Source: Anthoceros angustus
Taxonomy: Eukaryota; Plantae; Anthocerotophyta
DNA length: 64,000 bases
Assembly (NCBI GenBank): GCA_010909165.1
Contig: MU008173.1
Location: forward strand, 1,178,001-1,242,000
Direction: 5' to 3'
This document shows, piece after piece, positions 25 through 54,850 of this stretch. The notes beneath the pieces are model-generated. The model made no database searches. It saw only the letters and a program-made list of their open reading frames with translations, and had not been told where the DNA came from. Each line of letters starts with the position of its first letter. The first letter of the stretch is position 1. The position numbers were made by a program, and so were the translations under genes.

Positions 25-918
25 TTATAAAAATGTTTCCGGAAACAAGAGCTTCAATCTGGATTTGAGAGACTCTTCAATCGTGGTTGGTTCGGCCATT
101 GCTCCATTTCCGACGTCTCCACAGGCAAGCAATTTCGGGATAGGATTAATTATCATAACACCAAGTTCTTCAAGAACCTTCAAATGCGGCTTGGTAAATG
201 GACTGTCCCACATCAACGTGTTCATAGCAGGAGCAACAAAGAACGGCTTCGAAAAATCCCAAGCTCGCACGATGCAAGTCACTAAATTGTCACAAATGCC
301 ACTTGCAACCTGCAAAAGAACAGAAGCAGTGAGAACATTGAACAGAGCCTTCTCGACACTATGCACCTGCGTACGCTAATAAAACGTAAACGGACTGCGA
401 CCTGCACAAAGTCCTGATGTAGGCCTACATCTCAATATACCAGACACAAGTCTAGCATGTATGAGGACGACACCAAAATACTCTTGCACATAAGGAGGGG
501 TCAAAGTTAGAGTAGATCTCAAATCTTCGACAGTGACAAGAATGTGCGTGACCTCCAACATACTTCGAGACGCCAGTGTGCAATCACAGGGAGCTCTAAC
601 CTTAGCAAGCGTGTTGGCAGAAAGAGGGGCAATGACTAAGGCATCGGCCCATCGCCTGAGCTCGATATGAAGCACAGTGTCCCCTTTCTTCCTCCAACTT
701 AACCACTCGTTCTCATCGGTGTACAATCCAACACCGGGTGACAGAGAGCTGGAGTCGATGAAGTGCAACGCAGACTTGGTGACTACAACGGCTACCTCCG
801 CCCACTGCGAGATGCCGTTAGCAAGCGTAGTGAGCTTTATGGCTGCTACGCTTCCCGTAGCCGCAACGATGACGCGGGGCTTCCTGGGCTCGAAATTGGA
901 ACCGCCGCCAGACGCCAT
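25..918 (-). CDS. HAL3: Phosphopantothenoylcysteine decarboxylase (HAL3/PPCDC flavoprotein), intact, 2 exons (918-601, 309-25), 200 aa
   Basis: Spliced translation MASGGGSNFEPRKPRVIVAATGSVAAIK...VLHIELRRWADALVIAPLSANTLAK|VASGICDNL...PAMNTLMW...LACGDVGNGAMAEP matches plant HAL3 motifs. GT..AG intron 600-310 in phase 0. Catalytic His (VLHIEL) and Cys (ACGD) are present. Confidence 0.94.
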
Positions 919-939
919 GCGGCCACAAAACCTAGCCCT

Positions 940-1245
940 CAAGGCACGCAAGGCGCCGGTCGAGAAGATCCACAAGCGGGATGTCACAAACCTCTTGCCG
1001 AAAGCAAGCATCCAGCTGACACTTCACCACATTGCACTGTCCAAAGAATTTAGCCACCGGATGCTCGTCATCACCACTCTTGAACTGCTTGATGATCTGC
1101 ACAGGCAATTTGCAGACTCCACAAATCGCATCCCAACCGCTGGACATACGAGGCATCCTCAAGCGAGGAAATTCAAACGTCCGAGCAACCACGATGCTTG
1201 TGCAAACCCAGCAACTAGCTGCTGCGGGTTTGCCCTAGATTGCCA
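940..1245 (-). pseudogene. CMC2: Degenerate CMC2 (twin CX9C) copy upstream of intact HAL3
   Basis: Colinear with 54132-54450 but lacks the ATG-containing segment. Exon-2 KRC has become KSG (one Cys lost). The whole of exon 3 plus part of the spacer is deleted (junction near 935-940). Confidence 0.82.
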
Positions 1246-1737
1246 CCTAGGTGTGATAGGGTACTTAACCTGTTTTTATTTTTAACTAAAGCCAAACTTC
1301 TAGTTTTCTAAATCGCGATAAGAGTTTCCATGCTCCTTCTTATCTCGTGGCAACACACTATCGGAAGTTGTTTTTGAGACGGCAGATTGTGCTTTGAGCT
1401 TGAGAATTTCTTGTCTTGGTAATGATATTGTTGCACCATTTGTGGCTGCAAAGGAGTTTCTCAATAGTCTAGAGGTCGATGTGATCGTTCCTTCAACCTT
1501 CCTGCTTGGAAAGGATTTTTGGTAGAGAGCACATATTGATTATGACTTTTCACTCCATGGATGATCGCCTCCAGTCATAACCACGAGCATAAGCGTATCA
1601 AACCACACCGCCAAGGAAGACTGGTAGCAATCAACAGCTGCATACACACGGATGCAGCTGAAAAGGAGGCTTACTCACTTGGCAGCGAGAAGTCCTTTGC
1701 TTCCAGTTGTTAAATAGAGCATTGCAGACGGACAACT

Positions 1738-51331: not shown

Positions 51332-51512
51332 AATCACCTCACCGGGCGACGGCAAAGACCAGATTCATGCAAATCGTGCAGCAAGGCTTCAAACGACAAT
51401 ACTGAAACGGGACCAGAAGTCCAGGTTTCCTGATCGTGTCTGAAATAACTAGTACATGTGTATGTACATCCTTACCTTCTCTTCCAGGCAAACCACCACC
51501 GTTTCCCCGCAT

Positions 51513-52846
51513 TCAAGCTGCAGTCACGGAGCTTTTTCGTTTTCTTCTTAAGTAGACAGTCCAAGAAAATATTTCCAGTACCAAAGCAATGCCCGCTAGT
51601 ATTGCCAACACTGAAACATACACTTTCCTTTTGCTGCTCTGGTCAAGGCCGACGTGTGCAAAGAGATTGAAGCCAAGAAATATGTTGGTGGTTGCCAGAA
51701 GAATGGCGAGGTAGCCAATTGTATGATGGTAAATATTCCACAGGTAACGAACTTTGTGTTCCCTGTGTGGCCGCAGGACCAGTGCCAGCACCTATCAGTA
51801 TCACACAGCGCAATTGTCAGTTCATCTCGGCATGTATCCTCTTGTCCATGCAAACACAAGAGGAGAAATAAGCACCTGAAGCGTAGATAGCGAGAAGACG
51901 ACTGTGCCAATGGCCCCGTGAGTTATACGTTTGTCATCTCGGTTGTCCACTGCATATCGCAACCCGAGTCCGACAGCCCAGCCTGCCAACCCAAGGACGT
52001 ATCCTGACACTTGGAAGGCTATGTGAGCATAGAACCAGGTAGGGTCAAGAGATTTGAAGGGCCTAGCATATCTGGCCACAATCACTCCTACAGGTAGAAG
52101 GAAGCCCCAGGCCACGGCGTTCAGGATTGCATGATTCTGCACGAAATGGGGGCACAGAGTTTAGTCTGCAGCAACGTTTAGCAGATCCACAGGGAGAAGC
52201 AGAACGCACAGTTACCCACAAATTTGAGCTGCCGGTAAGGATACACTCCTGGAGGGGCAACTCCAGGACCCCTTTTTGCCAGGGAAAAGGTGGAGAAGTA
52301 GTTCTCGTAATCGTTCCCATTATCATGTGCCACAGGTACGCCACCTCTTAAAGGTCCCGAATTCCACAGCAGATTCAAAGACTCAGCACTGTACAAAACG
52401 GAAGCGAAGATCTTCACAGTGTCGCCGCCGAACTCTGCAGAGTAGTTGAGAGCGGTGAACAGTAGCTCCCCGGGGGTGGTGAGCGGCTTGCCATTGTTCT
52501 GGCTACGGCCCATTAGGAAGGGCTTCACAACCGCCAGGCCAGCGGCATCTCTCCAAGCTAGAAAGGCAGCGGAGCCCGACATCCTGGCGGGGTGAAGAGG
52601 ATTGATCCCCCATCCCGACCACCGCTGGGTGGCAGCCATGGTGTGAGCAGTGTAAACAGCAAGCAGCGTACCGTCCTCATAGCTCCACGCGAAGGATGCC
52701 CCGTTGGGCAGGCTCAGGCAAGCACCCAACTTCAAAGCTGTCCCGTTGATCTCAATAGTCTGGCTGCACTGCTGCGAGCAAACCAGGCCCTGCAAAATGC
52801 ACAGCGCAGCAGCTGAGCACCATAGCACTATCACGGAGGATGTCAT
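51513..52846 (-). CDS. DOMON plus cytochrome b561 domain protein (CYBDOM, AIR12-related), 3 exons (52846-52220, 52136-51876, 51791-51513)
   Basis: Signal peptide, DOMON (WSGWGINP..MSGS), heme-ligand His motifs HAILNAVAWG, WFYAHI, THGAIG, WNIYHH; GT-AG introns in phase 0. Confidence 0.92.
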
Positions 52847-53084
52847 CAGGAAATTTCAAAAGGATCTGGCGCTCGAACTGTCACCACCACCTTCACTGAA
52901 GAGTATAGCCCAAGTTCTGTTATCGCGCGATTCACGAAACCCAACTTGCTCTTGCTCCGGATATTCCGCCACGACTTCCACCAGCTGCTTACACACCGTA
53001 CGCATCCGCCCTTGCGGTAGTCTTTTGGTACCCTAAACTCGTAGAGACAGATTCTCGTCTTTACTACACAAGCGACTTCCTTGA

Positions 53085-53940
53085 CAGTATTTCCGGAACC
53101 AGGAGCTTCAACAGGAAGCGTGGTTCGGGCAATGGCTCCGTTTCGGAGTTCTCCAAGGCAAGCAATTTCGGAATAGGATTAATTATCATAACTCCAAGTT
53201 CTTCAAGATCCTTCAAATGCGGCTTGCTGGATGGAATGTCCCAACGTCAAAGAACGGCTTCGAAAAATCCCAAGCTCGCACAATGCAAGTTACCAAATTG
53301 TTACGAATGCCACTTGCAACCTGCAAACGAACAGAAGCAGTGAGAACATTGCACTGAGCCTTCTCTCGACACTATGCACCTGCGTACGCTAATAAAACGT
53401 AAACGGACTGCGACCTGCACAAGGGTGGCCTGCACAAAGTCCTGATGTAGGCCTACATCTCAGTATACCAGACACAAGTCTAGCATGCATGAGGACGAGA
53501 CCAAAATACTCTTGCACATAAGGAGGGGTCAAAGTTAGAGTAGATCTCAAATCTTCGACAGTGACAAAAATGTGCGTGACCTCTGACACACATCAAGACG
53601 CCAGTGCGCAATCACAGGGAGCTCTGACCTTAGCAAGCGTGTTGGCAGAAAGAGGGGCAATGCCTAAGGCATCGGCCCATCGCCTAAGCTCGGTATGAAG
53701 CACAGTGTCCCCTTTCTTCCTCCAACTTTGACCACTCGTTCTCATCGGTGTACAATCCAACACCGGGTGACAGAGAGCTGGATCGGTGTACAATCCAGCC
53801 TTGGGTGACAGACAGCTGGATCGACGTACAATCCAACACTGAGCAAGGGCAGTGAGCTTTGTGGCTGCCACGCTTCCCGTGGCCGCAACGATGACGCGGG
53901 GCTTCCTTGGCTCGGAATCGGAACCACCACCAGACGCCAT
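53085..53940 (-). pseudogene. HAL3: HAL3/PPCDC pseudogene
   Basis: Paralogue of 25-918. About 70 bp of exon 1 is replaced by a 38-bp tandem triplication (53744-53840). ICDN has become IRNN, the PAMN motif is deleted with frameshift, and the ACGD Cys region is destroyed. Confidence 0.88.
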
Positions 53941-53986
53941 GCGGCCACAAAACCTAGTCCCCACAAGACTGCATATAGCAGTGTCC

Positions 53987-54417
53987 TCAGGCGTCAGCCA
54001 CGGTTTGCCCGGCAGCGGGGACCGCAGCCTGCGCTCTTCTGGCACGGAGCCGTTCCTGCGACTTCCTGCTTGCTTCAAGGTTAGCTGCCCGCTTCACCTC
54101 TTTCTGCACGGCAGAGCAGAAAATCAGCTGCCAAGGCACGCAAGGCGCCGGTCGAGAGGATCCACAAGCGGGATGTCACAAACCTCTTGCCGAAAGCAAG
54201 CATCCAGCTGATACTTCAGCACATTGCACTCTCCAAAGAATTTAGCCACCGGATGCTCGTCATGACACCTCTTGAACTGCTTGATGATCTGCACAGGCAA
54301 TTTGCAGACTTCACCCATCGCATCCCAAGCCCTGCACATACAAGGCATCCTTAAGGAAGGCAATGCACTTACGTCCGAGCAACCAGGATGCTTGTGCAAA
54401 ACCAGCTGCGGATGCAT
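53987..54417 (-). CDS. CMC2: CMC2/Cmc1-like twin CX9C mitochondrial cytochrome c oxidase assembly protein, 3 exons (54417-54373, 54288-54184, 54103-53987), 88 aa
   Basis: MHPQLVLHKHPGCSDIIKQFKRCHDEHPVAKFFGECNVLKYQLDACFRQEKEVKRAANLEASRKSQERLRARRAQAAVPAAGQTVADA*; two exact CX9C motifs; canonical splice sites. Confidence 0.92.
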
Positions 54418-54850
54418 GACGGCGCCAAAGGCTGGCCCTAGACTGCCACCTGGGTCTGTACCAGCCCACCTGGTTGGAGGCCGACGTCGTAAACTGGCTG
54501 AAAGGTGAAACACCAGTGAGAGGGATCTATAATTCTATATAGACGAAAACTCAATTTAACATTCCAGGTGTCACGGCCGGGAGTCAAACTCATGCCCTTT
54601 CTGTCTGGAGCCTTAGACCACAAGGCCAAACCGTCCCGGTGTCTATTAACTGATTTTTTTTATAAACATGAATGTTTGAAAACCGCGTTGACCAATACTA
54701 CTACATCTCCAGTTGTCTACACAAAGAACGCAATCCGTGTTTGAAAAGACAGCTTTAACAGTACCAGTTTCGAGAATCGCTATTAGGTACACACAGCTAC
54801 AACGAGAGCGTGTAGTTGTGGCTCCTTTTTTCTTCGTGTCTCCAGATTAC

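Follow-up and report, generated by a model that had tools for sequence, protein, structure and literature searches.

The window analysed here is a stretch of 64,000 nucleotides (nt) from the hornwort Anthoceros angustus (assembly GCA_010909165.1, contig MU008173.1, forward-strand positions 1,178,001 to 1,242,000), and all coordinates below are positions within it. On its minus strand, between 54417 and 53938, a gene for the mitochondrial protein CMC2 is followed at once by the start of a HAL3 gene, of the type that encodes PPCDC, an enzyme of coenzyme A (CoA) biosynthesis. A sequence-only reading had flagged this pair as a candidate bicistronic nuclear locus, with the CMC2 stop codon 46 nt upstream of the HAL3 start codon on the same strand. 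That geometry is exact: the bases, read directly as minus-strand triplets, give ATG at 54417-54415, TGA at 53989-53987 and ATG at 53940-53938. A second copy of the two genes lies near the beginning of the window and is called copy 1, the flagged locus being copy 2. Run X1, cited among the features, comes from the same species, and its contigs match the window at 99% identity or more. The features of copy 2, including the spacer between its two open reading frames (ORFs), are the following, in the direction of transcription.

54373..54417, minus strand: CMC2 exon 1, copy 2; ATG at 54417-54415, 15 codons.
54184..54288, minus strand: CMC2 exon 2, copy 2; 35 codons with three of the four twin-CX9C cysteines; covered by X1 record 4, intron 2 spliced out.
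53987..54103, minus strand: CMC2 exon 3, copy 2; ends in the stop TGA at 53989-53987; X1 record 4 with 0 mismatches.
53941..53986, minus strand: inter-ORF spacer, copy 2; 46 nt.
53629..53940, minus strand: exon 1 of the HAL3 relic, copy 2; 312 nt, frame open, about 36 codons scrambled, as alignment to copy 1 shows.
53744..53839, minus strand: 38-nt tandem repeat in 2.5 copies, which takes the place of the segment coding GISQWAEVAVVVTKSALHFID.
53321..53628, minus strand: HAL3 intron, copy 2; 308 nt, 95.2% identical to the copy-1 intron; no X1 depth in the bin 53337-53503.
53064..53320, minus strand: exon 2 of the HAL3 relic, copy 2; two deletions, a premature TGA and a garbled Cys-loop; no Pfam match.

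The upstream cistron encodes a twin-CX9C protein, as had been proposed. Splicing of 54417-54373, 54288-54184 and 54103-53987 joins three exons across two GT..AG introns of 84 and 80 nt into an 88-amino-acid product, whose four cysteines (C13-x9-C23 and C35-x9-C45) are kept in alignment A1. The copy-2 piece matches the Pfam family Cmc1 (PF08583) at 3.6e-7 and 30.6 bits (cut-off 22) with intron 1 still inside it, and the orthologues in contigs L010 and L014, described below, score 62 and 54 bits against the same profile. Plant homologues at 59-64% identity carry the NCBI name COX assembly mitochondrial protein 2. A first exon of 15-16 codons is common to Calypogeia, Sphagnum and Marchantia. The 46-nt spacer contains a 6-codon mini-ORF (53974-53954) that ends 13 nt ahead of the HAL3-type ATG.

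The ORF that opens at 53940 has a true HAL3 N-terminus and a match of 32 bits to the Pfam family Flavoprotein (PF02441). The match comes from relic exon 1, which scores 32.4 bits over profile positions 2-76, against 65.2 bits for exon 1 of copy 1; with a partial match in exon 1 and none in exon 2, copy 2 has no full-length match to this family. The repeat has displaced the coding for some 23 residues that follow the nucleotide-binding stretch at the N-terminus, and a 1-nt insertion at about 53729 adds a base that is absent from copy 1 and from relatives. Further on, a 22-nt deletion between 53244 and 53243 takes out the PAMNTLMW block, a premature TGA stands at 53215-53213, and a 21-nt deletion lies near 53117. 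Behind the premature stop the Cys-loop region has been garbled from ACGDVGNGAMAEP to ALENSETEPLPEP. The PxMNxxMW block and the ACGD cysteine loop, which we take from the AtHAL3a literature to be the catalytic and substrate motifs of PPCDC/HAL3, are both intact in copy 1, and neither is intact in copy 2. Judged by its coding sequence, the copy-2 HAL3 is a pseudogene, and the flagged locus is no longer a working bicistron. In annotation, the gene at 53940 is to be marked as a pseudogene.

A 139-codon open frame (53213-53940, minus strand) persists in this relic across the exon-exon junction despite two frame-disturbing lesions, and the chance of such a frame is roughly 6%. Ribosomes on it would pass the junction, which, speculatively, might shield the CMC2 mRNA from nonsense-mediated decay (NMD).

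Copy 1 presents the opposite state, with the following features.

919..1250, minus strand: CMC2 relic, which forms the leader of the copy-1 HAL3; ATG gone, Cys23 changed to Gly, exon 2 relic at 992-1096.
601..918, minus strand: HAL3 exon 1, copy 1, intact; ATG at 918-916; Pfam Flavoprotein at 6.7e-18.
25..309, minus strand: HAL3 exon 2, copy 1, intact; stop at 27-25; spliced copy-1-type contig, X1 record 3.

Spliced across its single intron of 291 nt, the copy-1 HAL3/PPCDC is 200 amino acids long and matches PF02441 at 65.2 + 24.3 bits over profile positions 2-157 of 162. It is the only intact HAL3 within the 64-kb window (25-918). A deletion of about 170 nt (53964-54133 in copy-2 coordinates) has cost copy 1 the end of CMC2 intron 2, the whole of exon 3 and 23 nt of the spacer, and the leader that is left holds a 15-codon upstream ORF (uORF) at 1071-1024. 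Only CMC2 is intact at 53938-54417, and only HAL3 is intact at 25-1250. The same deletion sets an AUG of the CMC2 relic, at 1011, in frame with the HAL3 AUG at 918 with no stop between them; a start there, if used, would add 31 residues rich in Arg, Leu and Ser, none of them acidic, with a presequence-like look.

Comparison of the window with itself shows a direct duplicate of about 1.3 kb, in which 53121-53963 corresponds to 88-941 at 86% identity and 54132-54406 to 940-1212 at 91%. This was a duplication followed by reciprocal decay: copy 2 (53.0-54.4 kb) kept CMC2 and copy 1 (25-1250) kept HAL3. Two close relatives of the species, B and C, are represented by contigs and help to order these events. 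Relative B differs in the HAL3 intron mostly where the two copies agree with each other, so that the duplication postdates the split from B. Where sites vary, copy 1 shares its state with relatives B and C, and the derived changes lie in copy 2. On the copy-2 side, the mRNA of the upstream neighbour reaches at least 54634, which leaves no more than about 215 nt for the CMC2 promoter and 5' untranslated region (5'UTR). The DNA upstream of copy 1 is AT-rich and unrelated to the copy-2 flank (1213-1260 compared with 54418-54660). The two surviving proteins have very long branches in their family trees (1.03 changes per site for the copy-1 HAL3 and 0.6 for CMC2, against medians of about 0.15), a sign of much faster evolution than in the orthologues of other plants. 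Because of these branches, the protein trees did not place the species.

Transcript contigs support the joint transcription of the two cistrons. The X1 contigs derive from RNA, because the GT..AG introns of neighbouring genes are absent from them. X1 record 4 (429 nt, 0 mismatches) comprises 54261-54184, which is 78 nt of CMC2 exon 2, and then 54103-53753, with intron 2 spliced out; its path runs from exon 2 through exon 3, the stop codon and the 46-nt spacer into the HAL3 relic as far as 53753. Such contigs, which join CMC2 exons 2 and 3, the spacer and the relic, imply transcription across the spacer in this species. X1 record 2 spans 52890-53277 with 0 mismatches, so the lesions of relic exon 2 are real and transcribed. 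In X1 contigs with copy-1 variants the HAL3 intron is spliced out. One copy-1-type contig crosses the deletion junction (53957 joined to 54132) with at least 116 nt on the CMC2-relic side, and the copy-1 HAL3 mRNA must therefore start within or upstream of that relic. The earlier suggestion that HAL3 still sits behind a decayed CMC2 leader in copy 1 is borne out, since X1 contigs join the relic to HAL3 as its leader. Relative C (about 88% identity) provides a spliced contig of 588 nt that passes from CMC2 exon 2 to exon 3, the spacer and HAL3 without the frameshift, and its letters differ from copy 2 where copy 2 is scrambled. The contig of relative B is unspliced and genomic in type; it corresponds to 53842-54326, and the intact HAL3 segment is encoded by its loose ends. 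Relatives B and C keep the CMC2-HAL3 unit intact.

The arrangement recurs in other plants. HAL3 homologues were collected by word search and their contexts then fetched; CMC2 homologues were collected with the intronless L010 ORF as query, a word search with the intron-containing CMC2 (window 54127-54417) having given no matches. In the liverwort Calypogeia fissa (L003) 107 nt separate a three-exon Cmc1 gene from the HAL3 behind it, in Sphagnum troendelagicum (L009) the tandem has a spacer of 107 nt, and in Marchantia polymorpha (L012) the HAL3 exons begin 159 nt beyond Mp_6g03370 (Cmc1). The tandem is also held by two Sphagnum-type genomic contigs, L038 and L041. The exon structure of CMC2 is identical across the bryophytes examined, and across the streptophyte tandems HAL3 stands 46-351 nt behind CMC2. 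The pairing is not due to chance: liverworts, mosses and close relatives show it in the same order and with the same exon structure. In the Marchantia annotation (GCA_003032435.1, L012:5978-10086) the HAL3 exons are fused to a downstream BSD2-type cysteine-rich domain, and the resulting 428-amino-acid product is either a read-through gene model or a mis-annotation.

A search for contigs that encode both CMC2 and HAL3, which had been proposed as a check, found them in mosses and in an alga-like streptophyte. The RNA-type contigs with both ORFs are these.

L010 / L011: CMC2 ORF of 87 amino acids, spacer of 75 nt, HAL3 ORF of 233 amino acids.
L026: CMC2 ORF of 80 amino acids, spacer of 287 nt, HAL3 ORF of 254 amino acids.
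L031: partial CMC2 ORF, spacer of 107 nt, HAL3 ORF of 235 amino acids; Sphagnum, intron 1 retained.
L014-L016: CMC2 ORF of 100 amino acids, spacer of 351 nt, HAL3 ORF of 224 amino acids; three separate runs.

Contigs L014 (98-1426), L015 and L016 come from runs ERR12684107, ERR12684108 and ERR12684111 of a GC-rich streptophyte. Both ORFs stand behind a 5'UTR of 97-377 nt in a total of seven contigs, drawn from several runs and from three species or more. In Selaginella there is no tandem, and a hexokinase gene ends 65 nt upstream of HAL3; none was found within 8 kb in Diphasiastrum or within 10 kb in Adiantum and Capsella. About 40 remaining CMC2 loci from plant-associated metagenomes showed no tandem in flanks of up to 3 kb. 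Two sets of single-gene transcripts were considered and set aside. HAL3 transcripts L004-L008, with leaders of 126-1094 nt and without CMC2, group in the tree with ferns and angiosperms and so have no bearing on bryophytes; the P0130 contigs L019-L024, which are monocistronic for CMC2, group with the conifer Cryptomeria.

The start codons suggest how a second cistron might be reached. The CMC2 AUG has a weak context (C at -3, C at +4) in L010, L026 and L014, and a purine (G) at -3 in copy 2. In each of these contigs a purine stands at -3 of the HAL3 AUG; position +4 is G in the two from mosses and A in L014. AUGs ahead of HAL3 number 1 against 7.2 expected in L014, where about 650 nt separate the two starts, and 4 against 9.6 in L026. 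They are out of the HAL3 frame or fall within the spacer, and the ORFs that they begin, 2-32 codons long, close before the HAL3 AUG, the sole exception being a 6-codon ORF in Sphagnum. CMC2 lacks an internal in-frame AUG, and hence an internal Met, in every tandem-bearing species, a pattern that would be expected if in-frame AUGs were selected against upstream of a second cistron. Seed-plant CMC2, monocistronic where checked, has Met at the HKHP-M-C position and elsewhere (alignment A1; L019-L024).

In the model that these features suggest, the intact unit would be transcribed from a single promoter upstream of CMC2 into a single mRNA. CMC2 would be read from the first AUG, in a weak context in most species, and ribosomes would reach the HAL3 AUG by leaky scanning past the CMC2 AUG, helped by reinitiation after very short out-of-frame ORFs. 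Copy 2 would now yield a CMC2 mRNA with a dead HAL3 as its 3' part, and copy 1 a HAL3 mRNA with a uORF-bearing leader. Duplication and complementary loss would in this way have resolved the bicistron into two single-gene loci.

The sequence-only reading knew of no CMC2-PPCDC pair, a statement that is outdated: a locus of this composition, CMC2/COAC1, is listed in Auxenochlorella protothecoides and five other trebouxiophytes (PMC11892635). The Auxenochlorella locus appears as bicistronic in Datasets S01, S02 and S05 of that study, and is confined to the supplementary tables, absent from the main text. It consists of UTEX250_A10.26400 (Cmc1-like, 276 nt) and then UTEX250_A10.26395 (PPCDC), with a 37-nt 5'UTR, 2 nt between the ORFs and no AUG before ORF2. 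Colinear pairs are given for Prototheca cutis, Chlorella vulgaris, Nannochloris and Coccomyxa, and for Chlorella sorokiniana with PacBio support. The second ORFs of such algal loci are reached by leaky scanning, as shown by mutagenesis at other loci (PMC11892635). The bryophyte unit resembles the algal one in having a Cmc1-like gene followed by PPCDC on one strand, a short inter-ORF distance and no in-frame Met in the upstream ORF. It differs in its spacers of 46-287 nt with several out-of-frame AUGs and, in the present window, in being duplicated with one cistron lost from each copy. The literature on bicistronic or polycistronic HAL3, PPCDC, bryophytes and Marchantia gene identifiers held no report of CMC2-HAL3 in land plants.

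Two further plant systems invite comparison. CDC26-TTM3 of plants and green algae is bicistronic and shows an interplay with NMD (PMC11892635). CMC2-HAL3 is like it in placing a small conserved protein ahead of an unrelated metabolic enzyme, in its conservation in the green lineage and in mRNA features expected to trigger NMD. CDC26-TTM3, however, is kept in flowering plants, whereas none of the four vascular plants sampled yielded CMC2-HAL3; both ORFs of the former have been shown to be translated, and for the latter this is a prediction. The second system, a CX9C-type uORF ahead of MIC1, had been named correctly: in homology group 8 of the conserved-peptide uORFs (CPuORFs) of land plants, a small CHCH (twin CX9C) ORF lies upstream of a Mic1-like main ORF (PMC2075485; PMC2276209). 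It too has a twin-CX9C mitochondrial-type upstream cistron, and has been explained as a stable transcriptional fusion of two genes. Its small protein is CHCHD7-like (PF06747) rather than Cmc1 (PF08583), its downstream gene is another one, and its range includes angiosperms. In duplication-degeneration-complementation, each duplicate loses a different ancestral sub-function, after which both must be kept. The present case departs from that scheme in that the sub-functions are whole cistrons of one mRNA and not regulatory modules or domains. No earlier example was found of a bicistron resolved by duplication and complementary loss of cistrons.

CMC2-HAL3 is a real and old pair that looks like a two-cistron unit. 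It has two conserved ORFs on the same strand, a short inter-ORF distance and colinearity elsewhere, features that belong to the definition of a conserved bicistronic locus of the green lineage (PMC7896298; PMC11892635). The flagged locus is probably the CMC2-keeping daughter of a recently duplicated CMC2-PPCDC two-cistron transcription unit. The proposal of a bicistronic locus thus stands in one part, with spliced contigs across the spacer and both-ORF contigs in relatives, and falls in another, the downstream cistron here being a pseudogene. What is new is best regarded as a land-plant representative of a class of locus already known, with the unusual outcome of duplication and the loss of one cistron per copy. 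A wider view has about an even chance of being right: CMC2-PPCDC would be ancestral to the whole green lineage, kept in trebouxiophytes, at least one zygnematophyte-like alga and all three bryophyte groups, and lost in vascular plants, and the hornwort would provide the first documented natural un-fusing of a eukaryotic bicistron.

Several points weigh against this account. The RNA evidence consists of de Bruijn contigs, which can span two genes even where no single transcript does. In copy 2, X1 gives no coverage of CMC2 exon 1 or of the 5'UTR (depth 0 in the bin 54339-54505). The copies cease to be homologous about 45 nt ahead of the CMC2 ATG, so that the duplication took with it no visibly long promoter, and the parental copy was not identifiable from the upstream flank of relative B, a 30-nt loose end of which fits neither copy. 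AUGs before HAL3 are at chance level in the window (4 against 4.8 expected) and in L010 (6 against 6.1), and this lack of depletion in hornwort and Sphagnum-type mRNAs makes pure leaky scanning, as in the algae, unlikely there. The taxon of L014 is an alga-like one deduced from trees in which its proteins group with the zygnematophyte Mesotaenium, and that of L026 is likewise deduced. The absence from vascular plants covers four genomes with flanks of 4-10 kb.

One rival reading has two overlapping but separate units, in which HAL3 would start inside CMC2 or the spacer, CMC2 would be polyadenylated inside or after HAL3, and short-read assemblers would have merged the two mRNAs. In its favour, the RNA evidence consists of contigs, the CMC2 regions of bryophytes show no shortage of AUGs, a difficulty for translating a second cistron, and fern-like and angiosperm-like HAL3 transcripts (L004-L008) are monocistronic. 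Spacers of 46-107 nt, however, cannot hold a terminator and a promoter, and copy 1 is still expressed without the end of intron 2, exon 3 and half of the spacer, its leader reaching at least 116 nt upstream of the deletion. Both-ORF contigs with a 5'UTR recur across species, CMC2 without an in-frame Met occurs only in tandem-bearing lineages, and the orthologous algal pair has PacBio support. Separate units are for these reasons unlikely.

A single two-cistron unit could also have been assembled more than once, with the streptophyte adjacency arising independently of the chlorophyte CMC2/COAC1, or repeatedly within bryophytes. The pair is unlinked in Mesotaenium, as judged by scaffold names only, the tandem is missing from Selaginella, Diphasiastrum, Adiantum and Capsella in the flanks covered, Dataset S02B lists nothing for Chlamydomonas, and spacer length spans 2 to 351 nt. 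Yet trebouxiophytes, an alga-like streptophyte, mosses, liverworts and this plant all have the same two families in one order and on one strand, with one exon structure throughout the bryophytes, and it is easier for such a pair to be lost several times than to be put together several times. Independent origin is accordingly quite unlikely.

It is highly improbable that the flagged locus still works as a bicistron and makes an active PPCDC from the ORF at 53940. The 139-codon frame is open across the junction and transcribed, and the N-terminal nucleotide-binding stretch and the VLH.ELRRWAD stretch are kept. Against this, about 36 codons are now an out-of-frame repeat, PAMNTLMW is gone, the Cys-loop is garbled and a stop stands at 53215-53213; exon 2 has no Pfam match, exon 1 scores 32 bits against 65 in copy 1, and it is copy 1 that agrees with relatives B and C, copy 2 being derived. 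An assembly artefact, with the two copies as haplotigs or a mis-joined duplicate, is a general possibility and nothing more, and it is scarcely credible for copies that are 86-95% identical, lie 53 kb apart on one contig, bear different large lesions and each have exact counterparts among separate RNA-type contigs of this species.

Conserved nuclear mRNAs for two proteins are few in land plants. CDC26-TTM3 is the standard example, and CMC2-HAL3 adds a second, with an apparent range from green algae to mosses, liverworts and a hornwort. Marchantia, Sphagnum and Anthoceros offer models for how a downstream ORF is translated when an ORF of about 74-100 codons, itself containing AUGs, precedes it. 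With the unit intact in close relatives and split here, nature has provided an experiment on whether the linkage of a mitochondrial assembly factor with a CoA enzyme matters. The freed cistrons allow one to ask what changes in start context, in leader uORFs and in exposure to mRNA decay. If an ancestral bicistron was indeed un-fused in this plant, co-transcription of CMC2 and HAL3 is dispensable. For annotation, a CMC2 ahead of HAL3 in bryophytes is not to be dismissed as a uORF.

Pfam gave no match for the small exons of the upstream neighbour, which is BRAP2-like in look. A tRNA-like look at 54560-54640 was not confirmed by a scan, which found no tRNA there, and an Rfam scan gave sub-threshold snoRNA noise alone. 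The downstream neighbour (51500-52846, minus strand) is spliced and expressed and has a DUF568 (DOMON-type) domain (Pfam 6.9e-10); its membrane-spanning exons look like cytochrome b561. Its ATG at 52846 lies about 45 nt past the last transcribed base of the HAL3 relic that was seen (52890). In keeping with a hornwort, introns around the locus measure 76-129 nt, and the GC content is 48.7%.

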